Shown here: one piece after another, positions 257 to 61,290 of the stretch
Numbering within the stretch: the first letter of the stretch is position 1
Layout: every line of letters starts with the position of its first letter
From: Macrostomum lignano
Taxonomy: Eukaryota
Assembly: GCA_002269645.1 (NCBI GenBank)
Contig: NIVC01002417.1
Span: 112,905-176,904 of the forward strand
Direction: 5' to 3'
DNA: 64,000 nt
Notes under the pieces: generated by a model
The model's database searches: none
Told to the model about the DNA's origin: nothing
Seen by the model: the letters and a program-made list of their open reading frames with translations, nothing else
Translations under genes and position numbers: made by a program

Positions 257-3200
257 TGCGCACCAGTGCGGACTGCCTAAGCGCCCAGGACCACCCAGTG
301 GAAAGCGAGTACGAATGCCTCGTTCCCTCCGCCTCGGCTTCTCCGGCCGCCTCATCAACCTCAGCATCGGCGTCGAATACGTCGAACTCGACAGACGAAT
401 CGACTGGATCGTCCGGCTTATTGTTGTCGAATTCAAATTCTACGCCTGCTACGGCATCGACAGTGGATCATCGACCAGCTGGCGTTGCTGTCAAGTCTCG
501 GGCTGCCGGTGGCGAGTTTCGAATAGTTCTAGCATTCGCGCCAGCTCAGGCTTTACTAGTAGCAGCCTCGGAGGGTGCCGCCAATGCTAGCGCCACAATT
601 GCCGAACTGAAATCTGCCGGCCTGCGTTTGGCCAGCCGGTTGAATGCCCGATTCTTGCTTGTTGACGAACCCGACGGCGGGGCCGTGTTCTCGTCTGCGG
701 GCTCAGCGATGGCGGAGCTGGCTAAGCAGTCGCTTGAGCACCTGCTGCCTGCTAGCTTTTATAGGCGGACACCGGATATGCTCTATATGCATAGGTGAGG
801 CTCTGAGTTTTGTCCTGCGTGTCTTTTGCTTGTGTGTCTGTGCTGTCCGTGTCTGTGCTGTCTGTGTCTGTCAGCTGTTTGTGTCTGTGCTGTCTGTGTC
901 TGTGCTGTCTGTGCCTGTGCTGTCTGTGTCTGTGCTGTCTGTGTCTGTCCTGTCTGTGTCTGTGCTGTCTGTGTCTGTGCTGTCTGTGTCTGTCCTATCT
1001 GTGTCTGTGCTGTTTGTGTCTGTGCTGTCTGTGTCTGTCAGCTGTTTGTGTCTGTCCTGTCTGTGTCTGTGCTGTCTGTGTCTGTGCTGTCTGTGTCTGT
1101 GCTGTCTGTGCCTGTGCTGTCTGTGTCTGTCCTGTCTGTGTCTGTGCTGTCTGTGTCTGTGCTGTCTGTGCCTGTGCTGTCTGTGCCTGTGCTGTCTGTG
1201 TCTGTCCTGTCTGTGTCTGTGCTGTCTGTGTCTGTGCTGTCTGTGTCTGTGCTGTCTGTGCCTGTGCTGTCTGTGTCTGTCCTGTCTGTGTCTGTGCTGT
1301 CTGTGTCTGTCAGCTGTTTGTGTCTGTCCTGTCTGTGTCTGTGCTGTCTGTGTCTGTGCTGTCTGTGCCTGTGCTGTCTGTGCCTGTGCTGTCTGTGTCT
1401 GTCCTGTCTGTGTCTGTGCTGTCTGTGTCTGTGCTGTCTGTGTCTGTCCTATCTGTGTCTGTGCTGTCTGTGTCTGTCAGCTGTTTGTGTCTGTGCTGTC
1501 TGTGTCTGTCAGCTGTTTGTGTCTGTCCTGTCTGTGTCTGTGCTGTCTGTGCCTGTGCTGTCTGTGTCTGTGCTGTCTATGTCTGTGCTGTCTGTGTCTG
1601 TGCTGTCTGTGTCTGTCAGCTGTTTGTGTCTGTCCTGTCTGTGTCTGTGCCTGTGCTGTCTGTGTCTGTGCTGTCTATGTCTGTGCTGTCTGTGTCTGTG
1701 CTGTCTGTGTCTGTGCTGTCTGTGTCTGTCAGCTGTTTGTGTCTGTCCTGTCTGTGTCTGTCAGCTGTTTGTGTCTGTCCTGTCTGTGCTGTCTGTGTCT
1801 GTGCTGTCTGTGTCTGTGCTGTCTGTGTCTGTGCTGTCTGTCTGTTCTGTCTGTGCTGTCTGTGTCTGTCCTGTCTGGTCTGTGTCTGTCCTGTCTGTCC
1901 TGTCCTGTCTGTGTCTGTCCTGTCTGTGTCTTTCCTGTTTGTGTCTGTCCTGTCTGTGTCTGTCCTGTCTGTGTCTTTCCTGTCTGTGTCTGTCCTGTCT
2001 ATCTGTGTCTGTCCTGTCTGTGTCTGTCCTGTCTGTGTCTGTCCTGTCTGTCCTGTGCTGTCTGTGTCTGTCCTGTCTGTGTCTGTGCTTTCTGTGTCTG
2101 TGCTGTCTGTGTCTGTCCTGTCTGTGTCTGTCCTGTTTGTGTCTGTCCTGTCTGTCTGTGCTGTCTGTGTCTGTCCTGTCTGTGTCTGTCCTGTCTGTGT
2201 CTGTCCTGTCTGTGTCTGTCCTGTCTGTCCTGTCTGTGTCTGTCCTGTCTGTCCTGTCCTGTCTGTGTCTGTCCTGTCTGGTCTGTGTCTGTCCTGTCTG
2301 TCCTGTCCTGTCTGTGTCTGTCCTGTCTGTCCTGTCCTGTCTGTGTCTGTCCTGTCTGGTCTGTGTCTGTCCTGTCTGTCCTGTCCTGTCTGTGTCTGTC
2401 CTGTTTGTGTCTGTCCTGTCTGTGTCTGTCCTGTCTGTGTCTTTCCTGTTTGTGTCTGTCCTGTCTGTGTCTGTCCTGTCTATCTGTGTCTGTCCTGTCT
2501 GTCCTGTTTCTGTCTGTGTCCGTCCTGTCTGTGTCTGTCCTGTCCCTCTTGTTTGTTGTTTGTCTTGTCCTGTGCAATCTGTCCATTGTGTACTGAGCAC
2601 CTGTTCCGTCTAAGCGCATTAGTCCGCCCTAATACTCGTCCTGCATTGACGGCTGTCATGTCTGTCAATCTGGCTACAAAATGTCAATTATAAATCTGTG
2701 TAATAATATTGTTTAACATTTTTCTCAGAGACAACTGCGAGCTCAGCCTAATCTGCGTGCTCACCTGCGGCGATAATCTGCCTAGAGACCGCCTTAGCCA
2801 ATTAGTGGCCGCCCTGTCAGCCGGTCGGTCGAGCGCCTGCGCCTACCGCGGCCGCAGCCTGATAGTTGAGCTGTGCTCACACCGCCTGTTAATCCGGTTG
2901 GCATCGTTTCACACCGCCTGGCAACTGTGCGACTCGCACGCATTTCACGGCGCACTGGTTGCTTACGCCACCGATCGGGCCGCTTCTGTGGCCTGCGCCA
3001 AGACTCTGGTGGGTAATATTGCTCACCGAATGCCCGTGACCTTGGTTGCTATGCAACAGCCGGCGAAAGAGTCCGCTGTTTCAATAGAAGAAGAAGAAGA
3101 CTCCCAGCAGCAGGCGTTTAGCGCCGGTATCCGAACAGTTCACTTAGACTCGGCCCTAGCAACTAACAATTCCTGGTTCGCCGAGTTTGCTAACGAATGC

Positions 3201-4670
3201 CTGGCAGCTAAGGAATTAACCGAGCGCAAATTTCAAAGTCGATTTCCTTTGTTCGCCGTGGCCCATCCCAGCTCGGATAGGGATCGGGACTCGTTCGTGT
3301 CGCCGCCATCCGCCGGCACCAGTTATTACGACTGTCAAGATGATGGAGAGGATGCTGATACAGATAATTCGGTCTATTCTAGCGCCGGGTCTATAAGGGA
3401 TGAAGTTACTACTGCTGCTACTACTACTGCCAGTAATAACTGCAGTAGCACCCCAATTTATTCTTGTCCAGCGCCTACTACTACTACAAGACAACAGGCT
3501 GCTTTGTCGTCGTTTCGACCGCCATTGGCTTCGCAGGAAATCTGCGAGGTCTACGCAGATCCTCCGGATGCTGAGCAGTTTCTGCATCATCATCAGCAGC
3601 AGCAGCCACTGACCAGCTCACCATCCGCTAGTTGCTATAGCGATGATTCCACTTACGCTTACACTTGCAACGCGTTGCCGCCGGGCATTTATCGCTTAGT
3701 GAATAGTCGATCAGACTACTGTCAGTACTACAATCAGCAGGATTCTGCTAGACAGCCGCCTCCTCCGCCGCCTCCAGCATCGATGAAGTCTTTGTTTACA
3801 TTTAACCCGTCAGCTTCAATACACAGCAGTTTAGCTAAGCTAGCCAAGCTTGGCGCTAGCGGCGGCAATTGCAATAATAATAATAGTAGTAATAGTAATA
3901 ATAATAACAGTAGTACCAACGGTCAGCAGCTGCACAAGACTTACTTAGCTGTGCCGGCGCCGCCTTTGACACTTGCCGATCTGCCAGTGTGCACCGATCA
4001 GCGCCTTGTGCCGCCCCGGGACAGTCCAGTGCCTCAGCTAGTGGTCACCTGTATAGATTTTGTCGAACGCGAAGGCGGATTGAAAGTTGATGGAGTTTAT
4101 CGATTGTGCGGCAACTCTGCCGAGACTTCGGCTGTGATGGACCTGTTGCTAAGGGAACCGGACTGTAAGCTGGCCGCTCTCAAGCCTAAGCCGTCTGTCT
4201 GCACAGTGACCAGCGCGTTAAAACAACTACTGATGAAGCTGGAGCCTTCGCTAATTCCCGGCCAATTGCTCAGCGGCCTACTCAAAGTCAGTAGCACGCC
4301 TAGGCACTATCCAAACTTTCAACCGAACGTGACTTATTATTTTGTTAATAATCTCAGCCAGCCGGCTCTGACCTGTCTGAGGTACATTGTAAACCATCTG
4401 CATCGGGTTAGTTGCTATGCGGCCGAGAATCGAATGAATTCCACTAACTTGGCAGTTTGCTGGATTCAGACCCTCATGCCGCCTAGCGATCCCAGAATCG
4501 GACTGGCCTGTCAGGACCAGCTGCAGAGTCTCATTGAGACGCTAATCCGATATCCCAATCTGTTGAATCCTATTGCGTCATCGGCTGCTCCGACTAGCGG
4601 CAGCTCAGAATCGATGATGCAGGACAGTTCGACGCTGGTTCCGCCTCCGCTGCCGTCGCGTAGAGTTTAA
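257..4670 (+). CDS. ARHGAP35: p190-type RhoGAP (ARHGAP35/ARHGAP5 family), 3' part: end of pseudoGTPase pG1, pG2, Tyr/Pro-rich linker, C-terminal RhoGAP; 5' exons lie outside the window
   Basis: Exons 257-794 (acceptor ccccag; donor AG|gtgagg) and 2729-4670 (tttctcag|A) join in phase 2 to give HR-DNCELS. LSLICVLTCGD...SLIVEL...LASFHTAW...AFHGALVAY...RMPVTLVAM matches the p190 pG2 pattern as I recall it (LRIVMCLMCGD...LSYHSSF...VHGYIVFY...IPIQLVAL). AGLRLASRLNARFL resembles the end of pG1. RhoGAP: VPQLVVTCIDFVE, GVYRLCGN (arginine finger present), NRMNSTNLAVCW. The symbol denotes the family (co-ortholog of ARHGAP35/5). Confidence 0.85.
826..2570. repeat. TGTC/TCTGTG low-complexity satellite filling RhoGAP intron 795-2728
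   Basis: (gtctgtgtctgtgct/cct)n; produces the spurious C/V/L/S-rich ORFs in all frames. Confidence 0.95.
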
Positions 4671-8334: not shown

Positions 8335-11332
8335 ATGTTCAACGTAAAGACCAGCGCTCACGGTGTTGCGAGGATCTTTGGCAACTCGTCTAGTTCGAGT
8401 CGTCGGAGTCTACCAGTGAGACTGGCTTGGTCTGCTGCATGGCTCCTACTCACTGCCCTGCTGTTGCGAGGTGTGGCCACCTACTTGGCCAAGCTCGCAT
8501 CTAGTCGTCAGCCAAACGCCGGACTCAAACGCGTCTTTGTTGCTGACGGGGCCGCCTTCGAGTTTCCAGATTTGTACTTTTGCAACGAACTACAGATTGG
8601 CGGCGGGAATAGCGTGCTGCTCAACTACAGCGAAGCTGCTTCTGTTAACTCGGCCCTGGATTTGGCTAACAACACCTTTGAGAAGGCGTTCGGCCAGCTA
8701 AATGATAGCGGGTATTGCATGCTTTATGTTTTAACTAGAATTTTATGCTTTGGGCTGGAGCGCTGTAAGTGTTGCCTGATTGAGTTGAGCACACTGTAGG
8801 AGAGTCAGATTGAGTTGAGCACACTGTAGGAGAGTCAGATTGAGTTTAGCACACTGTAGGAGAGTCAGATTGAGTTGAGCACACTGTAGGAGAGTCAGAT
8901 TGAGTTGAGCACACTGTAGGAGAGTCAGATTGAGTTGAGCACACTGTAGCTGAGAGTCAGATTGAGTTGAGCACACTGTAAGAGAGTCAGATTGAGTTGA
9001 GCACACTGTAAGAGAGTCAGATTGAGTTGAGCACACTGTAGCTGAGAGTCAGATTGAGTTGAGCACACTGTAAGAGAGTCAGATTGAGTTGAGCACACTG
9101 TAAGAGAGTCAGATTGAGTTGAGCACACTGTAAGAGAGTCAGATTGAGTTGAGCACACTGTAAGAGAGTCAGATTGAGTTGAGCACACTGTAGGAGAGTC
9201 AGATTGAGTTGAGCACACTGTAGCTGAGAGTCAGATTGAGTTGAGCACACTGTAAGAGAGTCAGATTGAGTTGAGCACACTGTAAGAGAGTCAGATTGAG
9301 TTGAGCACACTGTAAGAGAGTCAGATTGAGTTGAGCACACTGTAAGAGAGTCAGATTGAGTTGAGCACACTGTAGGAGAGTCAGATTGAGTTGAGCACAC
9401 TGTAGGAGAGTCAGATTGAGTTGAACACACTGTAGGAGAGTCAGATTGAGTTGAGCACACTGTAAGAGAGTCAGATTGAGTTGAGCACACTGTAGGAGAG
9501 TCAGATTGAGTTGAGCACACTGTAGGAGAGTCAGATTAAGTTGAACACACTGTAGGAGAGTCAGATTGAGTTGAGCACACTGTAAGAGAGTCAGATTGAG
9601 TTGAGCACACTGTAGGAGAGTCAGATTGAGTTGAGCACACTGTAAGAGAGTCAGATTGAGTTGAGCACACTGTAGGAGAGTCAGATTGAGTTGAGCACAC
9701 TGTAGGAGAGTCAGATTGAATTGAGCACACTGTAGGGAGAGTCAGATTGAGTTGAGCACACTGTAGGAGAGTCACATCGATTTGAGCACCCTGTAGTAGA
9801 GTCAGATTGAGTTGAGCACTCAAAAGGCTATTGAACCCGAGCCCGCACTTTCTCTCTGAGACATTCCAGCTCGCTTTCCGAGTCTGAAAGACTCCTCCTG
9901 CTGAGGCTGCGACCTGTTTCCCTGCTCCGCTCTGTGCCGTACCGCCTTTTGTCCGACGTCGTTGGACAGAAGCTGAAGCAGACTTTTCTAGGCAACTTCG
10001 GAGTCTACAGCGTCGGCGAAAGACCTCCAAACGATCGTCCCGTTGCCGTGTCGGAGTTTTACCATCCGGAGCACCTGAAATGCTTCCGTGTAGAGCTCAC
10101 CAACTCGGAGCGACTGGCTATGCGCAGAGATAATAATCGACTGACCTTTCACTTGACTCTGGACGCGTATTATGCTACCATGCGACATGTGGCCAGTCCT
10201 TATCGGCTGCCAGACATCCCTGTACCCACTGGCAGACGTGGACAGTCGATGAATATCCGACCTCTGGACTGGAACCTCAACGATCCGCTGCAAATCGACT
10301 CTGGTAGCGGCATGGTTCTCTACTTGGTTCCGCCGGGGCACTATCCGTCTCCCCTGGCAACCAGCGGCTGCAAACGACTCCTCCTGGGTCCGGGACGCGC
10401 CTACGACATTGCCGTGGGCATGACAGTCACCGAGCTGCTTCCGGCTTCAGATTTCACTGACAGGTAATTTTTACGCTCGTAGGCGTGTTGATGGCCTTTT
10501 TCCAAAGCTTTAAAAAATTAAAATCGTCGAAGCTACACAGTGCGCTTATAAGCTCGGAGTTTTATTGGCCAACCAACCCTTCACTCACAGGTGCGTGTCC
10601 CGGCACGAACCAGTCGCCTTCTATAATCCGTACAACGGAGGCCGCCAATGGTTCAACTACAGCGGCTCTGTGCCCCACTATTCGCAAATTGCGGCAAATA
10701 ATCTAGCCAAGTTCAACTGTTCGCCGATGCCTCAGGCTTTGCCATGGAAATACCGCGGCCTGCCCGTGTGCCTGAACCTTAGCAGCGCCATAGAAATCAA
10801 CGAGACCCGAGCGGAAATACTCTGGCGAGGACTTCAAGCAATGAATTCTAGCGAACAGAACGACTGGAAGCAAAGTCTGCAACCGGACGACCGCAAGTTG
10901 CCGCCGTGTCGTCAAAGTCGCTACTGGACGGTGGACTCCTACGGCCGGTGGCCGAACTCGGCCAGCCTGTTTCGCTACGCTACTCAACTGGTGGCCTCCG
11001 AGTTGGCATTGGCTCCAGAAAATTATCGATCCTTATTGGCCGGTCTGAGAATCGTGTCCAATTTCAAAGACGTGTCCGAGTACGCGCACGCCGAAGCTAT
11101 CGAGGAGTACACCAGGCGGGGCGGTCTGAAAGTGACACTGCGAGCGGCTTCCAGTTTCAACGATTTAAATGTCTTGGCTAGGGACTACAGGTTGCAGCAG
11201 TTCGTGGCGGACACTGGCGGGGCAATGGGACTTTATCTGGGCTGCTCGACGTTGACTCTGTGCGAGCTGCTTGAGTTGCTGCATGGAGTTGTGCTCAGCC
11301 TGGCTGCTAAGCTGCGGAAAGGAAGGGGTTGA
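8335..11332 (+). CDS. DEG/ENaC (amiloride-sensitive Na+ channel / ASIC family) subunit, ~570 aa, 3 exons
   Basis: Exons 8335-8711, ~9870-10463 (alternative acceptor 9861) and 10591-11332, all phase-2 junctions. Pre-TM1 TSAHG motif, hydrophobic TM1, FPDLYFCN (FPAVTxCN motif), PPCRQSRY, and TM2 FVADTGGAMGLYLGCSTLTLCELLE with the GxS selectivity filter. Confidence 0.9.
8779..9816. repeat. 30-bp tandem array (~35 copies) GATTGAGTTGAGCACACTGTAGGAGAGTCA in ENaC intron 1
   Basis: Near-identical head-to-tail copies. Confidence 0.95.
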
Positions 11333-12170: not shown

Positions 12171-12706
12171 TCGATGTGCGAGAGTTGTTATCGATATCAC
12201 TCCTTGCGAGGGGACACGGATATCGGTTTTTTAATCTATTGGCTATGACAAACAAATGGCTCCACAAACCTCTTCATTTATCACCCTGTCATTTAAACAA
12301 CATTCGGTAGGTTTTACAGTGCCCTACCTATTAAATTGCAATGCTTTCATCTCGCAGCTACTTATAAATTTGGTCAGAACCCAATTAAGGCCAACACGAC
12401 TAAAGGCTGTAACTACTACGCATAATGTAAATATTTGTCTCATTCTGCAAGTCTCTCTTTCACTCAGCAGCTGCGCACAAAATTTTTCTATAGCTATTAA
12501 AAGAAGATAAGCCGCGACTAGTTTAGAGGTTGATAAAGTTATATAAACTTCTAATAACGATATTTAGCGAAATGGCAAACAGTTAAACATATTTGAGTTC
12601 TTCTCCATCCAGAAGTTGAAATGGTGAGCTGTTTGTTAGATTGAATAGATTACTAAATAAATTTGTCATTCAGAATTGTTTTGTTGTTCTTGTTTTCCTA
12701 ATTTGC

Positions 12707-13197
12707 CATTTTGGCGCCCCCTTGCCAGTAGCTTTGGCGCCACTTCTTGCCAGTAGCTTTGGCGCCCCCTTGCCAGTAGCTTTGGCGCCACCTTGCCAGT
12801 AGCTTTGGCGCCCCCCCCCCCTTGCCAGTAGCTTTGGCGCCACCTTGCCAGTAGCTTTGGCGCCCCCTCCTTGCCAGTAGCTTTGGCGCCTCCTTGCCAG
12901 TAGCTTTGGCGCCCCCTTGCCAGTAGCTTTGGCGCCCCCTTGCCAGTAGCTTTGGCGCCCCCTTGCCAGTAGCTTTGGCGCCCCTTCTTGCCAGTAGCTT
13001 TGGCGCCCCCATGCCAATAGCCTTGGCGCCCCAATGCCAGTAGCTCTGGCGCCCCCCCCCCTTGCCAGTAGCTTTGGCGCCACCTTGCCAGTAGCTTTGG
13101 CGCCCTCTTGCCAGTAGCTTTGGCGCCCCCATGCCAATAGCCTTGGCGCCCCCATGCCAGTAGCTCTGGCGCCCCCTTGCCAGTAGCTTTGGCGCTG
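12707..13197. repeat. ~22-bp minisatellite TTGGCGCCCCCTTGCCAGTAGCT
   Basis: About 21 copies; source of the QSYWQGGAK ORFs. Confidence 0.9.
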
Positions 13198-13228
13198 TCT
13201 TGCTAATTCAAATCGCAAATTTTTACAG

Positions 13229-14560
13229 ACATCCGGGACCCATTCAGCTGGCGCTAAGAAATTCCGACTGGCTCTGGTCGGTTCGGTCGGAGTTGGAAAG
13301 ACGTCCATTGTGGAACAGCTGATCTCAGCCGGCCTCGCGAAGCAGGTTTGCGATGACAAGAACCGATTTCAAATTCTGATGTCAGTGACATTTGACGGAA
13401 TAAAAGTATCGCTATCCATTCTTGATACGCCTGGAGCGGTGAGTCTGAGTCAATTCCAAATTTGTCTGCCGATTTTTGAGCAAGAGTTGGCCAGTGGGAA
13501 GGAGACCTGGACAAGATAGGTCATACTTTCACAAGATGGGTCATGCTTTCACAAGATGGGTCATGCTTTCACAAGATGGGTTATGCTTTCACAAGATGGG
13601 TGATGCTTTCACAAGATGGGTCATGCTTTCACAAGATGGGTCATGCTTTCACAAGATGGGTCATGCTTTCACAAGATGGGTCATGCTTTCACAAGATAGG
13701 TCATGCTTTCACAAGATGGGTCATGCTTTCACAAGATGGGTCATGCTTTCACAAGATGGGTCATGCTTTCACAAGATGGGTCAAGCTTTCACAAGATGGG
13801 TCATGCTTTCACAAGATGAGTCATTCTTTCACAAGATGGGTCATGCTTTCACAAGATGTGTCATACTTTCACAAGATGGGTCATACTTTCACAAGATGGG
13901 TCATGCTTTCACAAGATGGATCATGCTTTCACAAGATGGGTCACACCTGGACAAGTTGGGTCACACCTGGACAAGTTCGGTCACAACTGGACAAGATGAG
14001 TCATACCTGGACATGAGAGATCATTGCTGAGTGAGGAGTATCATAAGTCAAATCAAGCAGTTGCAGCAATTATAACAAATAAAAGCCTTTAAACAATCGC
14101 TTCGCAGCACGGACACGACCCGCACACAATATTCGACATGAGGCGTTTCAAGCCGGACGCCATTGTGCTTGTGTTCTCACTTGTCAGTCGTCGAACATTC
14201 AATGCCCTGCCGCACAGACTGCAGCTGATAAAGAATTTCACCAGCGTCAACTCAGACTGGCTTCTTCTGCTTGGCAACAAAACTGACCTGCTGCATCAAA
14301 AACAGCCGGGGCCCATCGTGTCCAATAAAGAAATTGACAGATTTCTGTCGGAGCATCCAAAAGCACGCTATCATGCCATATCTGCTCTGGGAGAGGATGC
14401 TACAAAATTAAAAAGCATTTTCAAACAGTTTGTTCAAACGATTACTACTACTGAAGAGTCTGTAGCTGGACCCAGCGGCGAGGCTCTGCTGCTTACTAAG
14501 CCGTTAGTGTTGACTTTTTGTAGCGTTGACAAGGGGAGGCGTTGCCGCCCATTCCGCTAA
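13229..14560 (+). CDS. Atypical Ras-superfamily small GTPase
   Basis: Exons 13229-13438 (tttacag|; KKFRLALVGSVGVGKTS P-loop; ILDTPGA|gtgagt) and 14108-14560 (ttcgcag|; DAIVLVFSLVSRRTF, LLLGNKTD G4, ISAL G5), phase 0/0. A start-codon exon ending ATG 12621-12623|gtgagc is phase-compatible (inference). Confidence 0.75.
13510..14012. repeat. 20-bp minisatellite ACAAGATGGGTCATGCTTTC in the Ras-like gene intron
   Basis: About 23 copies. Confidence 0.95.
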
Positions 14561-15022: not shown

Positions 15023-17090
15023 ATGGCTGATTTCGTTGCGCAAGGCATGGGGGTCCTTGGACATCAAGGTGTCAATGCCAGGTCAGCACTTCAGCATGGA
15101 GGAGAAAGTAAACAGGGCCTTATAGTCTGCTGTGGCTGATTCAATAGAATGTCATACAATTATAAAATAAAATAACTCCACCCACAGCAAAGAGTACCAC
15201 TCCTGTCAGGTCAACCTGCCCAACAGTGTCGGCATGACTCCGCTGATGCTGACAGTTGCTGAAGGACGAGTTGACGCAATCGACGTGCTGCACAGGATGG
15301 GCGCAGATTTGGATATTGAGGTGTGGCTTGAAAAATCGGTTTTTAACTGGCCTATATTGTTTCGCTATCGCACTGAATCAATTGGCTTTTTGGCCAAAGA
15401 CATTTTTTATCTCTTTATCCGCGACCATTGATGATGGCGTTTATCGATGATATTGAAAAAAATAATAAATATTTTGATTTTCCACTCGATTTTCCTAGAA
15501 ATGACCTGAGCAGGGGTTGGAAAACTTTTCACCTCCAGGGCCAGGTAGAGAACCTAGCGCATGATTGTGGGCCAGAGGAGGGGAGAGAGAAGAGTGAGAT
15601 AGACAAGAGAAATAAAAGAAAGGAGTGGCAAGGGAATAAAGGAAGAGAGATGACGAGATGGGTGATGATGATAATGATGAGTGGAGAGGAGAAGAGAGAA
15701 GAGGAGAAGAGAGAAGAGGAGAGGAGAGGAGAGGAGAGGAGAGGAGAGGAGAGGATAGGAGAAGAGAGGAGAGGAGAGGAGAAGAGAGGAGAGGAGAGGA
15801 GAGGAGAGGATAGGAGAGGAGAGGAGAGGAGAGGAGAGGAGAGGATAGGAGAAGAGAGGAGAGAAGAGGAGAAGAGAGGAGAGGAGAGGAGAGGAGAGGA
15901 GAGGAGAGGAGAGGAGAGGAGAGGAGAGGAGAGGAGAGGAGAGGAGAGGATAGGAGAAGAGAGGAGAGGAGAGGAGAAGAGAGGAGAGGAGAGGAGAGGA
16001 GAGGAGAGGAGAGGAGAGGAGAGGAGAGGAGAGGAGAGGAGAGGAGAGGATAGGAGAAGAGAGGAGAGGAGAGGAGAAGAGAGGAGAGGAGAGGAGAGGA
16101 GAGGAGAGGAGAGGAGAGGAGAGGAGAGGAGAGGAGAGGAGAGGAGAGGAGAGGATAGGAGAAGAGAGGAGAGGAGAGAGGAGAAGAGAGGAGAGGAGAG
16201 GAGAGGATAGGAGAGGAGAGGAGAGGAGAGGAGAGGAGAGGAGAGGAGAAGAGAGGAGAGGAGAGGAGAGGAGAGGAGAGGAGGGGAGAGGAGAGGAGAG
16301 GAGAGGAGAGGAGAGGAGAGGAGAGGAGAGGAGAGGAGAGGAGAGGAGAGGAGAGGAGAGGATAGGAGAGGAGAGGAGAGGAGAGGAGAGGAGAGGAGAG
16401 GATAGGAGAAGAGAGGAGAGAAGAAGAGAAAGGTGAGAGAAGAAAGCTAAGTAGAGACACAAACTTTGAGGGGGCCGGATTGCTATTGTGAAGTTTTAAG
16501 AACCCTAGGTAAGACCAGATAGAGAGGATTTGCGGGCCGGAGTTGGCCGACCACAGAGCTACAGGAATGTATACGTCTTAAGCATTTCTAACAAAACGGA
16601 GCACAATGTCTTACTTCGGTTGTGTTTTCTTTGTTTAGCCAGACATATCGCTGCCCCTTGAATGTTGTCTTCTTGACCTTGAATCACGGCATTAACTTGA
16701 GTCTATACATTTCTTGTGAACTTCTGTCGCGGGTTCAGTACAGACTTTACCGCCCTTAAAAACCTATCGTCCAAACCGTGTCAGGACAAGCTGAGCTTCA
16801 CCGCTCTGACCCACGCATCCGTGCGCAACAACTCGCCGGCTGTGACAAAACTGCTCAAGCTTCAAGCTAGACCGGATCCGCAGGACTTTTGCGGCAACAC
16901 GCCGCTAATCTGGGCGGCCAGGTGCGGCAACGCGGATGTGATCAGGGAGCTGCGCGACAGCCTGACAGATTTGCGCCAGTGGTTGCACAAAGGCGAATAC
17001 GAAATGGATGCCAGGGAATGGGCTGAATATTTTGGTCACAATGAGTGCAAGAGCATCATTGATGAGAGGTACGAGTACACTAGCTCATAG
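15023..17090 (+). CDS. Ankyrin-repeat unit (3-4 repeats): stand-alone gene or prodomain of the downstream caspase
   Basis: Exons 15023-15081, 15188-15320 and 16785-17090 (or to donor at 17068), phases consistent. Motifs GMTPLMLTVAEGRVDAIDVLHRMGAD, SFTALTHASVRNN, GNTPLIWAARCGNADVIREL. AATAAA at 17103 follows the stop at 17088-17090. Confidence 0.8.
15682..16430. repeat. (GGAGA)n purine pentamer array in the ankyrin intron
   Basis: Seen directly; source of the GEERR / SSPLL ORFs. Confidence 0.95.
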
Positions 17091-17185
17091 AGCTTTTCGC
17101 TTAATAAAGTTAGGATTCTATGTGAATTTTGTATCCTACATACATGTCCTGTGCCTAAAATTCATAAAACTGGCACAGCAGTGAC

Positions 17186-17345
17186 TAGACAACCCACGAT
17201 AGATCCTAAACAATGTCTAGACAACCCACGATAGATCCTAAACAATGTCTAGACAACCCACGATAGATCCTAAACAATGTCTAAACAACCCGCGATAGAT
17301 CCCAAACAAAGATATCAACCCAGGATAGATCCTAAACAATGTCTA
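17186..17345. repeat. 32-bp tandem repeat GACAACCCACGATAGATCCTAAACAATGTCTA
   Basis: About 5 copies between the ankyrin and caspase exons. Confidence 0.85.
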
Positions 17346-17502: not shown

Positions 17503-20500
17503 AGTCAAACAGTTGATGCAGTTGGATGCCGCAGCATCATCTGACCCTGTCCAACCCCAAATTGAAACGGCTGGTGCTGATGCTGAGTTGGCATCTGATT
17601 ACATGCATCCGGCGATAGACGCACGAAGGCCTTGGTACACAATGCAATCGCACAGGTGAGATGATAGCCATCTGAGTTCTCATCATTGGTTTTATTACTT
17701 GAGCAAGCAATTCTCCTAGGTGTTATTCTCTGCGATTCTCCTCAGACGTGGCTACGCCATGATAATTAACATAATTGACTTCGAAGACGAACTAAATCTG
17801 ACAAAACGACACGGCGCTGAACTCGATTTTCATGAAGAGTTAAAAAGTCTCCTTCACGCGTTTGTTAAAATAGGCTTTGAGACGAAATATTTCGAGAATA
17901 AGTAAGTTGATTCAGTGTTACAATTTCTACATACTGCTCGAATTCTCGCAATAATAGACATCTATTAACTGCTTTCTTCCTCTGGACCACGACATATTAA
18001 GGAAAAGAAATTAGCATTTAAAAGAAGAGAGAAGGTTATCTATCTATGTTTACTATTGCTCGCCTAGCATACCCGTTAATTGTGACTTCGAAATTCCCCC
18101 CACGTATAAGCTTCAGTCTATGGTCTCCATTGCCAAGACCTCAGTCGCAACACAGTATATGGTCTCCATTGCCAAGACCTCAGTCACAACACAGTCTATG
18201 GTCTCCATTGCTAAGACCTTAGTCGCAACACAGTCTATGGTCTCCATTGCCAAGACCTCAGTCACAACACAGTCTATGGTCTCCATTGCCAAGACCTCAG
18301 TCGCAACACAGTCTATGGTCTACATTGCCAAGACCTCAGTCACAACACAGTCTATGGTCTCCATTGCTAAGACCTCAGTCGCAACACAGTCTATGGTCTC
18401 CATTGCCAAGACCTCAGTCACAACACAGTCTATGGTCTCCATTGCCAAGACCTCAGTCGCAACACAGTCTATGGTCTACATTGCCAAGACCTCAGTCACA
18501 ACACAGACTATGGTCTCCATTGCCAAGACCTCAGTCACAACACAGTCTATGGTCTCCATTGCCAAGACTTCAGTCACAACACAGTCTATGATCTCCATTG
18601 CCAAGACCTCAGTCACAACACAGTCTATGGTCTACATTGCCAAGACCTCAGTCACAACACAGTCTATGGTCTCCATTGCCAAGACCTCAGTCACAACACA
18701 GTCTATGGTCTCCATTGCCAAGACCTCAGTCACAACACAGTCTATGGTCTCCATTGCCAAGACCTCAGTCACAACACAGTCTATGGCCAACTTTGTTGTT
18801 TAGGCCACAGATTCTATATTACCTCGTAGATGTGTCAAGCCAAGAACATGGATGAAGGAATCATTCCATGTTATTCCTTCATCCATGCTCCAGCATTCTG
18901 GAATATACGAATATAGAATCTGTGGACTATCTGATAGGTCTTATACGAGATACGAGTAATACCTATCAAATGGAGCCCTATCGCTAACCTGGAACTTGAA
19001 ATTATTTACAGATGTGCCGAATTCTTCAACAATCTGATGTCGAACACTGACTGGCCATTAAATGACTTCAATGAGCACGACGCCTTCCTGTTGTGCATAT
19101 GCAGCCACGGCGGCGAAGGATTCGTGTACGCCACCGATGGAAAAGTGAAGTTGGAAGACGTTTTCAGTCAGGTACATGTATATTTGTACTAATATTAATA
19201 ATTGATTACACCTGCCCCAATTGGGCCAGATACGCTCGTATTGTGCAACCGACAGCTCAGCTGCAGCTATTGTGCGCGGCGCATCTGAAGGCTGCGTACG
19301 GCTGTTCAGTCCAAGGACTGGGAGGGGGTCACCACACACCCTCAATTCTGGTACCATTTTACAGCTGTTTGAACTGACAAAATGCATGAGTTAAGTGTCT
19401 TTCTCAAGAGCACAAATTGTTTTGAGTGGATCGAGAATCGAACCCCCGACTTTTCTGTCGTGAGTCCGACGGTCTAACCCCTAGGCTACAACCCCTCAGT
19501 CAGGTATAAGTATAAAATTACTTTTGATATTATAGCTATTTGTAGTCTGTACTTTAAAGCTACGGGAGTGTTTAGCAATTAACTTTAAACTTAATAAGCT
19601 CGGAAGTTCCATATCGTCGAAAAAAATTTCTGATCAATCTGCTTAGCTTTTAAAAGCGATCCATGGCTACCCTTAAGTAGTCACCTGTCTTACAAGCAAA
19701 TAAACTAAAAAAATCACAAGCTCTCATTTCTATCTCTTGAACCTCAGTGACGTAAAATTTTCGGTAAGGTCATCATCGTATTTTAAGATGGTTCCTTAAT
19801 ATTTGAGAAGCTTCCTAAGTTGTCTGGTGAGCGCAAATATGTAATTAATTCAAATTTGGTGAAACTTTCGTTATTCTCGGCAGCTTCTTGCGTTTCTTCG
19901 TAAATCTAAGACCAAGGACTACTAAAAGTATAGAAGGTTGCAACACTCGAAATCTATGAAAAATGTTTTGAAGGCCACTTTTCCAAACTATGTCTTTTTT
20001 CGTTGGGACCTTCGAAATTTGTTCTCCTTTTTAAATAACACTATTCTTAAGGCAAACCCTTTTTTCAACAAGGTATGCCTTACTATCTAAAATTATTGTA
20101 GTTACGTGCGATTAGCCGTGTAGAATCTGTAAACAAATAAACAAAATGTTTGTTTCAAAGCGGCAGTATCCAGCAAAATATTTATCTAAAGTGGACTTCA
20201 AAACTTTTTTCCATGAAATGTGAGTGTCGCGTCCTGTATTTATGTTGCTCTCTGGTTGTCCTTGGCTAAGACAGGCCCAACCTTGTCGTAAAGTCTCGAA
20301 AATTAGGCCTATGTACAGCTGCAGTTGCTGTGCGGGTTGGAGCTTATGCGACGATACTTTTCGATAGCTTTATAGAATGGACCCTCTATCTCCAAAGCTT
20401 AAAGATCATACGTGGTCGAAAAAAAATTCTTTTGTGGAATTGTTTCAAAGCAGAATATGCGGATTATTTGTCCTTGTTACATTTGGTTCCCCAAGCCTAA

Positions 20501-23328
20501 TTAAGCAACACAAATTTATTTTGCAGGTGCGGCGAACTAACGGACTCAAAAATAAACCGGTGCTGTACCAACGTAAAGTTAGCCGCATGCCCAGCCTCAC
20601 ATTTTTTAAAACAGCTTGGTCCACCCGTGGAAATGACTTAAATCAAAAGTTTTTCGCTAGACTAGCTTGGTCCAGAGGGTTTCAGACCTTCCCAAAGTAA
20701 AGCCTTGGTTCTAGACACAAAATAAAATTCGTCAAAGCCGGAAAAATGCGGCTGGACCATGGGCTGGAATCCCGAGAGTGTAGGATACGCTGAAAGTCTG
20801 GTCCACTTGCGGAATCTCGATTTCCTATCTATTTTGCATATTTTGGTACACGTTTGAGGCAAATCGGTTGGATAACAAAAATTCTACAGGCCTCCAAAGT
20901 TCGGAATTCTAACAAATTGGAACATTTCCCTTTCTGTGGCTTACGGAGGGTTACAAAATCTTGGTCCACAAAAGGAATATGAAACTACTACATCTGTTCT
21001 TTGATTTGACATAAGAAATGACCGTCTACACTCCTGTATTGCTGAGATATAGCCGCATGAACAATGTACCGTCAGTTGAGCACATTGTAAAAAATAATCG
21101 TAAACGCATTAAACGCATTAAAACGCATTTTCGTGCGCGAAAAAAGAAAAAAAATTTAATAAAGCATGCGCCATTTTGATTGCTTAAATTAATTTCGAAT
21201 GCCATTGGCATTTCAAATACCAATATATCAAAAACGGTTTGTCTTTACTGTTATTTTTCATATTTAGTCCAAATTTATAAAATAGATATAGCTATACCAA
21301 ATGGAAGAAAAATACAATACCAAAATACCAAGCTTTGTAGTAAGCATTAGACAGTAAGTTTAGTTTAAAAGCTATAGTGTAGCCAGTGGAAAAAAGCACA
21401 AGCCCATTGTGCCTGTGTTTATAGGACTCTAAGTAGGCTAGTTTATTAAATATTTCTGACAGGGCTCTAGAGACATTTGTTTACTGTGGCAGTGTGAAAA
21501 TATTTATAAAGCAAGATATAGAAAGAAATACAAAATGTCTAATGGAACCAATAGACATTACAAACTAATTGTTTTATTATGGCTTTATTACTTTGAGTTT
21601 GAGTAGCCTATATTCATAAGAAATTATTATTGGGATTTTTATACCCTCCTACACTTACTTTCTTAAAAGACAATATTTGGAATAAAATCTAATTAATTTA
21701 TTATATAGAAATTAATTTAAGCAATCAAAATGGCGCATGCTTTATTAATTTTTTTTTCTTTTTTCGCGCACGAAAATGCGTTTTAATGCGTTTAATGCGT
21801 TTACGATTATTTTTTACAATGTGCTCAACTGACGGTACATTGTTCATGCGGCTATATCTCAGCAATACAGGAGTGTAGACGGTCATTTCTTATGTCAAAT
21901 CAAAGAACAGATGTAGTAGTTTCATATTCCTTTTGTGGACCAAGATTTTGTAACCCTCCGTAAGCCACAGAAAGGGAAATGTTCCAATTTGTTAGAATTC
22001 CGAACTTTGGAGGCCTGTAGAATTTTTGTTATCCAACCGATTTGCCTCAAACGTGTACCAAAATATGCAAAATAGATAGGAAATCGAGATTCCGCAAGTG
22101 GACCAGACTTTCAGCGTATCCTACACTCTCGGGATTCCAGCCCATGGTCCAGCCGCATTTTTCCGGCTTTGACGAATTTTATTTTGTGTCTAGAACCAAG
22201 GCTTTACTTTGGGAAGGTCTGAAACCCTCTGGACCAAGCTAGTCTAGCGAAAAACTTTTGATTTAAGTCATTTCCACGGGTGGACCAAGCTGTTTTAAAA
22301 AATGTGAGGCTGGGCATGCGGCTAACTTTACGTTGGTGAAGCTGTTCGTGGTACAGTCGTGCCGCAACCTGGATACGGATGCAGATCAAGTTCAAGAGAG
22401 CAGGCCAGATGCAGTCCACTACAGAAATCAGCAGGACTGCTTCTACGCCTACAGCGTTGTCGAGGGCTATTTGTCGCATCGACATCCGGAGCGCGGCTGC
22501 CTGTTCGCTCAGGTGCAGGGGCGTCGCCATGAATTTTGGTGGGAGGGGGGGGGCGACAAAGCAAAGAGTTTTACATGTACATGCACATGACTAAATTCCT
22601 ACAAGTACGAGAGTACATTATTTTGAGAGTCGGTTTTGTCAGCACTCATTTTGACGTCGCAGGCACTCATTTTGACGTCGCAGGCACTCATTTTAGCGCC
22701 GCAGGCACTCATTTTAGCGCCGCAGGCACTCATTTTAGCGCCGCAGGCACTCATTTTGGCGCCGCAGGCACTCATTTTAGCGCCACAGGCACTCATTTTA
22801 GCGCCGCAGGCACTCATCTTAGCGCCGCAGGCACTCATTTTAGCGCCACAGGCACTCATTTTAGCGCCACAGGCACTCATTTTAGCGCCGCAGGTGCTAT
22901 ATTTAAGCTCCCTGAAACAAAATTATTGCTTTCCACAACGGGTCACAAGGTGGGGTGGGGAGGACAAAGCTTGGTATGTACTTCCCATAGCTTTCACTGG
23001 GTGGGACATGTCCCCCTTGTCCCCCCTCCCGGTGGCGAAGCTGTGTACAGCTGTGAAACACAAAATATTGAATCAATCAGCTCTACTGTTGAAAAATTTC
23101 TGATGATAAAAGAATGATTTTCTTAATTTGAATTTCGAGGCCCTCCGCGACGTTCTTCTCGACGAAGATATCGACCTTCGTGAGGATGAATTCACCAGCT
23201 TATTTCCGGCAGTAATTCACCGGGTAGCCATTGAGACAAACGACAAACAGATTGCCTGCACAAAGAGTACATTGAGGAAGCTGTTGTACTTTCCACCGCT
23301 GCCAAGCTGCCCCAGTTGGGTATCTTGA
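17503..23328 (+). CDS. Caspase (peptidase C14A), interrupted by a transposon in the catalytic-Cys exon
   Basis: Exons 17503-17655 (WYTMQSHR), 17746-17901 (RGYAMIIN...KRHGAELD...GFE), 19012-19171 (DAFLLCICSHGGEG, catalytic His), 20527-20558+22338-22512 (NKP-KLFVVQSCRN, catalytic Cys; DCFYAYSVVEGYLSHR..RGCLFAQ) and 23140-23328 (KQIACTKSTLRKLLYF). All junctions are GT-AG and phase-compatible. Confidence 0.9.
18113..18787. repeat. 39-bp tandem array (~17 copies) AGTCTATGGTCTCCATTGCCAAGACCTCAGTCACAACAC in a caspase intron
   Basis: Seen directly. Confidence 0.95.
19195..19497 (-). mobile_element. tRNA-derived SINE (~300 bp)
   Basis: Minus strand: A box TAGCCTAGGGGTTAG, B box GGTTCGATTC, then TGTGCTCTTGAGAAAGACACTTAACTC (resembles conserved central SINE domains), then a tail ending in an AT-rich run. 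The anticodon arm does not pair properly. Confidence 0.7.
20567..22337. mobile_element. Non-autonomous foldback-type DNA transposon, 1771 bp, 630-bp TIRs, imperfect 8-bp TSD
   Basis: Arms 20567-21196 and 21708-22337 are near-identical inverted copies (the identical 66-aa ORFs at 20662- and 22042+ confirm this). Termini ACCAACGTAAAG...CTTTACGTTGGT. Flanks GGTGCTGT (20559-66) and GAAGCTGT (22338-45). Excision leaving one TSD restores K-P-K-L-F. Confidence 0.9.
22516..23045. mobile_element. Possible old hAT-like MITE carrying a 21-bp array
   Basis: Degenerate ends CAGGGGCGTCGCCA...TGGCGAAGCTGTG with internal G-run and C-run; putative TSD only 5/8 (CTCAGGTG/TACAGCTG). Confidence 0.3.
22631..22893. 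repeat. 21-bp tandem array GCAGGCACTCATTTTAGCGCC (~12 copies)
   Basis: Seen directly; source of the MSACGAK ORF. Confidence 0.95.
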
Positions 23329-24610: not shown

Positions 24611-24762
24611 AAGGAAAGTTACCTGCAGCTGCAGGCAGGCAGATCAGAGCAGGAGACACATCCGCAACAGCTGCCGAATCCGCGTTGGCATCACAGTCTT
24701 CGACTTTAACAGCTGTCGACGCCAATAAGCAAACCGACAAACCTTCTAAGCGACGGGACAAA

Positions 24763-25017
24763 ATGGAAAACGAAGCTGAGAATGTTGAACTGCAGCTAAT
24801 AAACCAACGACTTGGCTGTAAAGCTGATTTAAAGTTAAAACTACTTGTTGTCGGCTCAAGTCTTGTTGGCAAGACTAGCTTAGTCAGTAGGTTCGATAAT
24901 CCAAAATCGAATATTGACCATCTAAAACGCACGCTGCCCGGCTCCTTTCATCACTTCATTATGCCAGTTGGTGACGGTCGAAATGCTCAAATCAGAATCT
25001 GGGACATGTGCGGGATG
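24763..25017 (+). CDS. First coding exon of a Rab-like small GTPase; downstream exons not securely found
   Basis: LKLKLLVVGSSLVGKTSLVSRF (G1), KRTL (G2 Thr), QIRIWDMCGM|gtaagg (G3 followed by a canonical donor). The frame is open back to 24613. Confidence 0.7.
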
Positions 25018-25099
25018 GTAAGGATCGTTTCACCTATCCAAGTACATCACATGTAGTTTGATGTATATCCGTGATTCTTAGTTTTGAAATTTCGCCTAG

Positions 25100-41416: not shown

Positions 41417-43263
41417 ACTTTATGACTTTAAATTTAGTATGAAAAAAGCCAATTTGAGCTGCCACATTAACAGTTCATTTGGTGCTAGTATTATCTAAAT
41501 GCATTGCGCAATATTAGTTTGCTCACTTTTGCCAGGGAGATTTTAGCCTCAAAGATTTGCCCTGGTCAGGGCGTCCTTCTGAGTTGGATGATGACTACTT
41601 GTGCACACTCATTGAGGCTGACCCCCAACAAACCATGTGTGAGTTGGGGCAAGTCCTTGGGGTTGACCATTAAACAATTGCCACTCACTTGCATCAACTA
41701 GGCAAAGTGCACAAGTTGACTCAATGGGACCCCATGAATTGTCCAACTGGGACTGCAAAGGTGTGATCTTCTACAAGCTACTGCCACCCAACATATTGAT
41801 TATGGCCAACCTGTATTGCCAACAGCTGGACAGATTGGCCACTGCCATTGCATAGAAGCAACCAAATCATGGCCCAGTCCGATTCTTGCACAATAACGGC
41901 CACCCCCACACTGCCAAGATGACTTGCCAAAAGTTACTGGACCTTGGCTGGGAACTGGTGCCTCATCTTCCATATTCCCCTAACCTGGCACCTAGCAACT
42001 ACCATCTTTTCTTGGCCCTGACCAACGCCTTGATGAGCAAAACTCAAGGACTTCTAGACTAACAGGACGTAAAACTCAAAGATTGTGTAATTTTTTGGAG
42101 GCCACGATTTCCTAGAAAAAATACACTGCGAAGATAGGAAAAAATCAGTTTTTTGTCACAAAATCTGTGATTGTATTTGATCTGGGGCAGTGAAGACTAC
42201 CATTCTTTTAATTTAACATGCACAACATGTTACTCTATTATATTTTCATATAGCTGTGTAATGAAGTTTTCATTTTCATATTGTTTTCACTTTATTTCAT
42301 AAGCCCAAAGTTGCAAACTCACAAGTGGCATTAGGCCTAGCCAAATATCAAATTCAAGAAAAGAAAAGCTATTCAAATTTGTAATATAATAATTTTTTTA
42401 GCCTTTAAAATAAAAATTATTAAAAACTAATCAATGTTTTTTCTTATAGATACCTAGTAAAAATGGTTAGGGCCTATTTTTGTGATTAGCCTAAGTCTAT
42501 TCTTCTTAAATCTTAGTCCTAAATATAGGCTTGGCTTAAAAACTGATAATACAGCTTTCTCAAGCCTAGGTAACCAACCATATGAAAATATTTATTGGTA
42601 ATCTATATATAATAAAAAAATCTAAATATACTGATCTCTAAGTCATTGTCTAAATTTAATTACTTATTAGGCTAGATAGTGTAGTGATACTGATAGGTCT
42701 AGTTCTAGTAGGCCTAGGAATTAGTATAGTTACTAAACCTACAATAATAGCTTAAGACTAAGAGTACTTACATGCAATGTTTTTATACTTTATTTTAAAA
42801 AGAACAACACAAAAAGTTTGGCTAATGCCACTTGTGAGTTTGCAACTTTGGGCTTATGAAATAAAGTGAAAACAATATGAAAATGAAAACTTCACTACAC
42901 AGCTATATGAAAATATAATAGAGTAACATGTTGTGCATGTTAAATTAAAAGAATGGTAGTCTTCACTGCCCCAGATCAAATACAATCACAGATTTTGTGA
43001 CGAAGGACTGATTTTTTCCTATCTTCGCGGTGTGTTTTTTCCGGGGGATCGTGGCCTCCAAAGGATTGCACGATTTTTGAGTTTTGCGTCCTGTTAGTCT
43101 AGAAGTCCTTGGCAAAACTTTTGCTGATGAGGAAGCCCTATAAAACTGGCTCAATGAGTTTTTTGCCTCAAAATCTAAGAAATTCTACGCTGATGGCATT
43201 ATGTCTCTGCCTAAAAAATGGCAGAAGGTGATTGATTCAGATGGCAATTACTTCATTTCTTAA
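41417..43263 (+). mobile_element. Decayed mariner transposase (stops, internal deletion), split by an insertion
   Basis: LLYDFKF, AQY*FAHFCQGDFSLKD, GRPSELD, WDPHEL (WVPHEL motif), PYSPNLAPSNYHLF (YSPDLAP motif); resumes after the insertion as KTFADEEAL...FYADGIMSLPKKWQKVIDSDGNYF*. Confidence 0.85.
42045..43111. mobile_element. Non-autonomous DNA transposon, 1067 bp, ~290-bp TIRs, 8-bp TSD (P or hAT superfamily)
   Basis: CAAGGACTTCTAGACTAACAGGACG...CGTCCTGTTAGTCTAGAAGTCCTTG; perfect TSD GCAAAACT (42037-44 / 43112-19). Confidence 0.9.
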
Positions 43264-52470: not shown

Positions 52471-52516
<46 letters not shown>

Positions 52517-52552
52517 CAGTTAGTTAGTTTGTTTGTTTGTTTGTTAGTTAGC

Positions 52553-52592
<40 letters not shown>

Positions 52593-55031: not shown

Positions 55032-55067
<36 letters not shown>

Positions 55068-60544: not shown

Positions 60545-61290
60545 TTTTTTTACCGGTAAAAGTTATCGTTTTTCATTTTATCGGTAAAACTATCGATTTT
60601 CATTTTATCGGTAAAATAATAATCGATTTTCATTTTATCGTTAAAATTATCGATTTTCATTTTATCGTTAAAATTATCGATTTTCATTTTATCGGTAAAA
60701 CTATCGATTTTGATTTTATAGGTAAAATTATCGATTTTCATTTTATCGTTAAAATTATCGATTTTCATTTTATCGGTAAAACTATCGATTTTGATTTTAT
60801 CGGTAAAATAATCGATTTTCATTTTATCGTTAAAATTATCGATTTTCATTTTATCGGTAAAACTATCGATTTTGATTTTATCGGTAAAATTATCGATTTT
60901 CATTTTATCGGTAAAACTATCGATTTTGATTTTATCGGTAAAATTATCGATTTTCATTTTATCGTTAAAATTATCGATTTTCATTTTATCGGTAAAACTA
61001 TCGATTTTGATTTTATCGGTAAAATTATCGATTTTCATTTTATCGGTAAAACTATCGATTTTCATTTTATCGGTAAAATAATCGATTTTCATTTTATCGT
61101 TAAAATTATCGATTTTCATTTTATCGGTAAAACTATCGATTTTGATTTTATAGGTAAAATAATCTATTTTCATTTTGCCAGTGACATTATCGATTTAGTT
61201 TTATCAAATGAAAATGATCGATTTTATCGATTCTTGGATCATTACAGTGCCATCGATTTTTATTTTGTCGGTAAAATTATCGATTTCATA
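60545..61290. repeat. 27-bp array TTTCATTTTATCGGTAAAATTATCGAT downstream of afadin
   Basis: Seen directly. Confidence 0.95.

Follow-up and report, generated by a model that had tools for sequence, protein, structure and literature searches.

A caspase gene of the flatworm Macrostomum lignano carries a long foldback transposon in the exon that encodes its catalytic cysteine, and the locus raises the question whether the insertion has simply inactivated this copy of the gene or is removed from its transcript as a newly gained intron. The gene lies on contig NIVC01002417.1 (assembly GCA_002269645.1, positions 112,905 to 176,904, forward strand); this whole stretch of 64,000 nucleotides is referred to as the window, and positions are counted from its first letter. 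The original prediction had proposed that two adjacent base changes in one copy of the target-site duplication (TSD) created a 5' splice site, and had called a null allele equally possible. Our analysis points instead to a recent insertion that has left one copy of a redundant ankyrin-caspase gene null or near-null, with the change AA>GT in the TSD being a tandem substitution or an integration-repair error; we put the probability of this reading at roughly 0.7.

The foldback insertion lies in the catalytic exon exactly where it had been placed, as confirmed by the sequence and by the empty site of a paralogue. The element occupies 20567-22337 (1771 bp) and consists of two arms around a loop. 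The arms, previously described as near-identical, are reverse complements over 630 nt with a single mismatch (21155/21749), which falls at a homopolymer border (A8T3 versus A9T2). The termini of the element read ACCAACG...CGTTGGT, and the element plus one 8-mer of the TSD amount to 1779 nt, or 3 x 593. The empty-site protein was obtained by joining the four caspase exons of Table 1, with 20527-20558 of the catalytic exon continued directly by 22338-22512. In this arrangement the flanks and the right TSD copy reproduce exactly the peptide KPKLFVV of the UniProt entries A0A1I8IF03 (P0001) and A0A1I8G6D2 (P0002). Because it has terminal inverted repeats (TIRs), an 8-bp TSD and an empty site in the paralogue, the element is, as judged from its sequence, a class II (cut-and-paste) DNA transposon that is non-autonomous and has a foldback architecture. 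It is very young, and its insertion is recent.

The joined protein gives a full-length match to Peptidase_C14 (PF00656; positions 1-233 of 233, E 1.7e-29), and its best solved relatives are caspase-7 and caspase-3. In the alignment with caspase-7, KPKLFVVQSCR corresponds to KPKLFFIQACRG and SHG to SHG, and the catalytic residues in SHG and QSCRN line up with those in SHG and QACRG. The active-site pentapeptide is QSCRN, not QACRG; Q-x-C and the spacing to KPK are common to 125 relatives. The nearest relatives in a library of 1.8 billion proteins are ankyrin-caspase multidomain proteins of 350-2100 residues, some of them with an N-terminal protein kinase domain. In the window, a tentative donor GT at 17069 links the ankyrin exon in frame to 17746.

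The sole database relatives of the joined exons form a cluster of three M. lignano UniProt entries. A0A1I8IF03 is 91% identical to the window protein, and A0A1I8G6D2 shows one difference in 131 residues (Met in DMD for Thr in the window's DTD); KPKLFVVQSCR is unbroken in both. Because A0A1I8G6D2 reads through the insertion site with this single difference, a near-identical unbroken copy of the gene exists. The window itself contains one caspase copy. The third entry, A0A1I8G3K3 (P0003), coincides exactly with the C-terminal portion of the window protein; its first residue, Leu, is encoded at 22342, and the existence of this fragment is explained by the insertion. Encoding contigs were looked up for the three entries and for two junction-spanning open reading frames (ORFs), and none is on record. 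The sequenced line of M. lignano is known to hold 180 Mb of non-repetitive blocks that are at least 95% identical (PMC5730564).

In KPKLFVVQSCR the insert separates the Pro codon from the Lys codon, seven codons ahead of the catalytic Cys. Without splicing, the frame meets its first stop, TAA at 20698-20700 on the forward strand, 46 codons after the insertion point and, as had been claimed, ahead of the Cys codon; in-frame stops across the insert number 30. An uninterrupted caspase frame is thus absent from the window copy. The read-through product retains the His but neither the catalytic Cys nor any of the p10 part, and ends with 46 foreign residues. Its Pfam score is 35.3 bits versus 105.0 bits for the joined protein, and only profile positions 1-120 are covered. 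On the sense strand, AATAAA occurs in the insert at 20721, 21158 and 21681.

Table 1. Features of the caspase gene, its insertion, the candidate splice sites and the neighbouring genes in the window (a slash marks an exon boundary; bit scores are qualified in the text).
Feature	Position	Strand	Remarks
Ankyrin-repeat exon, same gene	16716-17068	+	provisional 5' limit; ORF; Pfam Ank/Ank_2 on joined protein
Caspase p20 exon 1 (RGYAMIINIIDF...YFENK)	17746-17901	+	donor AA/GTAAGT; tblastn and caspase-7 alignment continuous over junction
Catalytic-His exon (SHG)	19012-19171	+	CAC 19106-08; donor CAG/GTACAT
Catalytic exon upstream of insert (VRRTNGLKNKP...)	20527-20558	+	identical to N-terminus of A0A1I8G6D2
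Left TSD copy GGTGCTGT	20559-20566	+	derived, AA>GT at 20560-61; candidate 5' splice site CCG/GTGCTG
Left arm (terminal inverted repeat)	20567-21196	.	630 nt; terminus ACCAACGTAAAGTTAGCC
Loop, non-coding, AT-rich	21197-21707	.	511 nt; 28% G+C
Right arm	21708-22337	.	630 nt; holds CTAAC 22322-26
Right TSD copy GAAGCTGT	22338-22345	+	ancestral; AG 22340-41 = candidate 3' splice site
Catalytic exon downstream of insert (FVVQSCRN...LFAQ)	22346-22512	+	Cys codon TGC 22360-62
Last caspase (p10) exon	23140-23328	+	acceptor TTTCGAG/G; stop codon ends 23328
Candidate donor	20560		2.9 bits; rank 14 of 104 GT in exon and insert
Candidate acceptor	22341		1.1 bits; rank 35 of 115 AG in exon and insert
Native donors, caspase gene			5.4-7.2 bits
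Native acceptors, caspase gene			0.2-7.4 bits
Predicted spliced junction	20559^22342		AAACCG/CTGTTCGTG; k-mer AATAAACCGCTGTTCGTGGTACAG
Assembled left junction	within 20540-20590		CCGGTGCTGTACC; GT-bearing form AACCGGTGCTGTACCAAC versus GT-less form AACCGAAGCTGTACCAAC
Unspliced left junction			k-mer AAACCGGTGCTGTACCAACG
Mini-exon skip, ...FSQ/LFVVQSCR	native donor 19172 to AG 22341		k-mer TTCAGTCAGCTGTTCGTGG
Mini-exon skip, ...FSQ/SCRN	native donor 19172 to AG 22356		k-mer TTCAGTCAGTCGTGCCGC
p190-like RhoGAP gene	2709-4670	+	
Amiloride-sensitive sodium channel (ASC) member	8335-11332	+	
RA and PDZ (afadin-like) gene	43527-59444	+	multi-exon

The two TSD copies agree at six of eight positions, for which the chance probability at fixed positions is about 4e-3 (binomial arithmetic), and their two mismatches are adjacent, as originally described. 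Since the paralogues and caspase-7 carry Lys at this site, the right 8-mer with its Lys codon AAG is ancestral and the left copy, as had been assumed, is the derived one. A TSD of 5 bp (GCTGT) was rejected, as it needs the same two-base difference between the copies and in addition a coincidental GAA at the right end of the element. The left junction CTGT/ACCA (20562-20574) is the reverse complement of TGGTACAG (22349-22356, Val-Val-Gln codons), an 8-nt match over the TSD/TIR boundary that is probably due to chance (roughly 2% by estimate).

The motifs on which the proposal of a new intron was built are all present. The derived GT stands directly after CCG at a codon boundary, CTAAC lies in the right TIR and AG in the right TSD copy. 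Deletion of 20560-22341 (1782 nt) gives ...NKP-LFVVQSCRN... in frame with the loss of one Lys, so that on paper the locus has canonical GT..AG boundaries (20560/22341) with frame-keeping removal. Both sites had been called weak, and they are. Over 187,627 junctions of M. lignano, 65% of donors read GT(G/A)AG and 60% of acceptors CAG (PMC8629364), and neither the candidate donor GTGCT nor the candidate acceptor AAG fits this consensus. Their scores (Table 1) were computed with approximate generic metazoan weights; they and all other bit scores of splice sites given here are illustrative only. Macrostomum proteins of the neighbouring genes were sought for a local splice matrix, and the multi-gene query matched only an unrelated mammalian PDZ protein.

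The RNA of 20527-22400 is predicted to fold into a 630-bp stem with a minimum free energy of -1316 kcal/mol. CTAAC, which is the mirror image of GTTAG in the left arm (20578-82), pairs with it in the predicted structure, and the AG pairs with 20563-64. Accessibility was computed with a partition function for the outer 80 bp of the stem and applies to naked RNA only. CTAAC and the tract have a probability of being unpaired of 0.00, the A of AG one of 0.04 and its G one of 0.00; the donor GT alone is free (0.93), and its neighbours at -3 to -1 and +3 to +5 are paired. On this model the branch site and the 3' splice site lie within the 630-bp helix and should be out of reach for as long as helicases do not open it.

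Several observations weigh against a plain null allele, and most of them would speak for use of GT 20560 and AG 22340-41 by the spliceosome, that is, for an intron gain that the transposon drove and a point change completed, and that would restore an in-frame caspase without the one Lys. At the divergence of the arms, 0.013 differences are expected in the TSD and the probability of two independent changes is about 8e-5; drift is a very unlikely source of two adjacent changes in an 8-bp TSD whose arms differ at 1 of 630 positions, and an older foldback element at 42 kb, in contrast, keeps a perfect TSD. The GT that arises from AA>GT is exactly in frame with the one AG nearby, and the frame arithmetic holds. 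When the element with a perfect TSD was inserted in silico at 634 positions of the caspase coding sequence, 68% of the positions offered a GT..AG pair, in frame and free of stops, at most 25 nt away from both ends, but only 5 of the 634 (0.8%) offered one that lay within 10 nt and equalled or exceeded the observed pair in score. The native donors GTACAT and GTGCAG (the latter, CAG/GTGCAG with GT at 22513, closes the same catalytic exon, so that its native donor is also a GTGC) and the last acceptor CGAG are about equally off consensus, and the candidate scores of 2.9 and 1.1 bits come near the native range; weakness of the sites alone therefore does not exclude an intron. The downstream exons have not decayed, being identical to A0A1I8G3K3 and one residue from A0A1I8G6D2. 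Furthermore, the stem would leave a distance of about 10 nt between the two splice sites, the gene model A0A1I8G3K3 begins exactly at the proposed exon start, and transposon-derived introns with TSD-supplied splice sites are documented (PMC9860276). This model, however, is without the upstream mini-exon, and the other two models also begin at an acceptor, so that only the AG choice of a gene finder is seen. The acceptor side would be buried in the predicted helix and the flanks of the donor paired, both sites miss the species motifs and rank low among the GT and AG of exon and insert, and four GT(G/A)AG donors inside the element (21340, 21354, 21960, 22304) compete, along with many better acceptors; a donor-like GTAAAG of the element itself (20573) is not in frame with AG 22340-41. 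The upstream exon would have only 33 nt and, with a weak donor, would be poorly defined. The lost Lys is found in 115 of 125 representative relatives at fixed spacing to the Cys, its deletion lowers the score against the family profile by 9 bits, and the intact copy leaves little pressure for a rescue. On balance the in-silico evidence speaks against a new intron. It appears distinctly unlikely that one tandem-base change has made a working spliceosomal intron of an exon-disrupting transposon, with the hairpin juxtaposing or gating the weak sites, the insertion being polymorphic and the pre-insertion allele still in the same genome. The null allele is rated several-fold more likely than the intron, in departure from the original prediction.

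Three further explanations share parts of this evidence. The transcript might be processed in a leaky, heterogeneous manner, through several cryptic sites or by skipping of the mini-exon, into a mostly non-functional mix in which active enzyme would be no more than a trace. For this speak 64 in-frame stop-free GT..AG combinations spanning the insert, an acceptor at 22356 (GTACAG, 4.8 bits) that is better than 22341, the phase 0 of the intron starting at donor 19172, which leaves both skips in frame, and again the start of A0A1I8G3K3 at 22342. The same hairpin masks 22341, however, and the skip products lack the conserved KPK, the beta-strand leading into the Cys, or both, and we regard such processing as rather unlikely. 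The skip from donor 19172 to AG 22355-56 would give ...VFSQ/SCRN..., in which QSCRN is remade by coincidence and 17 residues, including the strand leading into the pentapeptide, are lost. A 630-bp double-stranded RNA expressed from the caspase promoter could, moreover, be diced to small RNAs against the transposon family and serve genome defence, which would be compatible with a null allele. The predicted stem is perfect, and long double-stranded RNA triggers RNA interference in M. lignano; other members of the family, on the other hand, were found neither by blastn of the window nor in the protein database nor by metagenome scans, and a defence role seems highly improbable. Finally, the two-base difference at 20560-61, or the entire palindrome, could be an assembly or polishing error. 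Near-identical paralogues and a perfect palindrome are hard to polish, and the lone arm mismatch falls at the homopolymer border. Mis-polishing by reads from the mirror junction was rejected, as it predicts C and A at 20560-61 where G and T are observed. A foldback read chimera was likewise rejected: the 511-nt loop is asymmetric, the termini are defined and the TSD exactly restores the frame of the paralogue. A0A1I8G3K3 is also truncated at exactly the same point, and we give an artefact hardly any credence.

For the null or near-null allele, the following course of events would account for the locus. A foldback transposon inserted between the Pro and Lys codons and generated the 8-bp TSD. 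Read-through translation ends 46 codons into the insert and leaves a protein without the Cys and the p10 part. The transcript, bearing three AATAAA signals and the predicted 630-bp hairpin, may be truncated or diced, or may undergo nonsense-mediated decay. The insertion in the exon would be tolerated because at least one intact near-identical copy (1 of 131 residues different) is present in a partly duplicated genome. The simplest origin of AA>GT would be a single tandem-base substitution or a gap-repair error at integration, presumably without function.

With respect to its own sequence, the element is without coding capacity: ORFs of the arms and the loop have no relative among 5.8 billion proteins, and a concatenated six-frame ORF query of the element gave no match in the protein database. 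In a blastn search of the 64-kb window the element matched only itself, and two exact-pattern scans of metagenome contigs gave no match. The heptamer TGGTCCA occurs in the left arm at 20617, 20668, 20799 and 20962 and reversed at 20753, i.e. five times per arm; 10 of its 13 occurrences in the window fall in the two arms. From their sequence and arrangement, these dispersed motifs look like subterminal transposase-binding repeats. Tandem Repeats Finder detected one 9-bp x 3.1 repeat per arm as the only tandem repeat, and no subrepeat arrays.

A second foldback element in the window (42045-43111) has arms of 290 nt (94% identical), a loop of 487 nt and the terminus CAAGGACTTC, and is flanked by the perfect 8-bp TSD GCAAAACT (42037-43119). 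It is nested in a degenerate mariner element, whose joined flanks align unbroken to residues 134-224 of the Mos1 transposase (E 7e-25). Kinship of the two foldback elements was rejected, as they share no significant sequence similarity. With its perfect TSD and its nested position, the second element shows that the foldback architecture is mobile in the M. lignano genome.

Ras/Roc-like GTPase exons lie on both sides of the ankyrin-caspase exons (14138-14560 and 24685-25056) and may or may not belong to the same gene; the neighbouring genes listed in Table 1 are all on the forward strand. Minisatellite arrays occur in nearly every intron and intergenic stretch and give spurious long ORFs in all frames; examples are 800-2600, 9000-9900, 12650-14030, 15430-16460, 17180-17340, 18100-18800, 22642-22894, 44200-44980, 54480-56800 and 60550-61170. 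The intron directly after the catalytic exon contains an array of a 21-bp unit x 12. In the intron before the catalytic exon, 19400-19500 on the minus strand has the look of a tRNA T-arm/acceptor remnant (GGTTCGATTCTCGATCC-like), possibly a fragment of a short interspersed element; neither ARAGORN nor Rfam (E up to 1) makes a call at 19400-19500, and Rfam and tRNA scans of the 64-kb window gave no match.

As found, the locus is an ordinary but unusually clean exon insertion, in which a young foldback element knocks out one copy of a duplicated caspase in a regeneration model. It is useful for annotation and marks the activity of long-TIR elements with 8-bp duplications in Macrostomum. If splicing were confirmed, the locus would be a rare example from an animal of a transposon turned into an intron, one in which both the pre-insertion allele and the one mutation that enabled the change could be pointed out; it would also be open to experiment in M. 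lignano, for which transgenesis exists.

Among known systems, Drosophila FB elements have arms of tandem subrepeats and 9-bp TSDs, and the Galileo group of the P superfamily has 7-bp TSDs. The caspase insert resembles both in its very long inverted arms, which form most of the element, and in its short non-coding middle, but differs from FB in its 8-bp TSD and in arms without tandem arrays beyond 9 bp x 3. A TSD of 8 bp is compatible with hAT, P or MULE-like elements. Members of hAT have 8-bp TSDs, repeated subterminal motifs and TIRs of 10-25 nt starting with YARNG; the insert shares the TSD length and the repeated subterminal motifs, whereas its terminus is ACCAACG, its TIRs measure 630 nt and no transposase was found. 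The original prediction had left the superfamily unassigned, and this stands, as the 8-bp TSD is joined with a terminus and TIRs that do not fit hAT.

Introners and other transposon-derived spliceosomal introns have been described in Micromonas, Aureococcus, Symbiodinium and others; flatworms are mentioned in neither report (PMC9860276, PMC12130899). Like introners, the caspase insert is a non-autonomous DNA transposon that has TIRs, is flanked by a TSD and lies in a coding sequence, with a candidate splice site in the TSD and, on paper, near-precise in-frame removal. Introners, however, are multi-copy, demonstrably spliced, and carry or recruit good sites, whereas the insert is visible in one copy, is known from sequence only and needs a post-insertion change for its only in-frame donor. 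Non-canonical introns derived from miniature inverted-repeat transposable elements in Fritillaria borealis, and the non-conventional introns of euglenids, in which TIR pairing unites the ends, offer a further parallel (PMC11282704): here, too, inverted-repeat pairing juxtaposes the ends, and TSD-like repeats stand at the boundaries. The stems of those introns are a few bp long and their excision machinery is altered or special, whereas the insert has a stem of 630 bp that buries the branch region and the AG, and Macrostomum shows no sign of such special machinery. Even as an intron, the case would join a known class of transposon-derived introns, in a phylum without a report in the three works cited (PMC9860276, PMC12130899, PMC11282704).

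The spliced products of the caspase insert are hypothetical, and in this it differs from a plant system that it otherwise resembles. In maize, exon insertions of Ds, dSpm and Mu are spliced from the pre-mRNA and give leaky alleles, with the spliced products observed. The likeness lies in an exonic, non-autonomous cut-and-paste element with cryptic sites at its ends or in its flank through which most of it could be removed.

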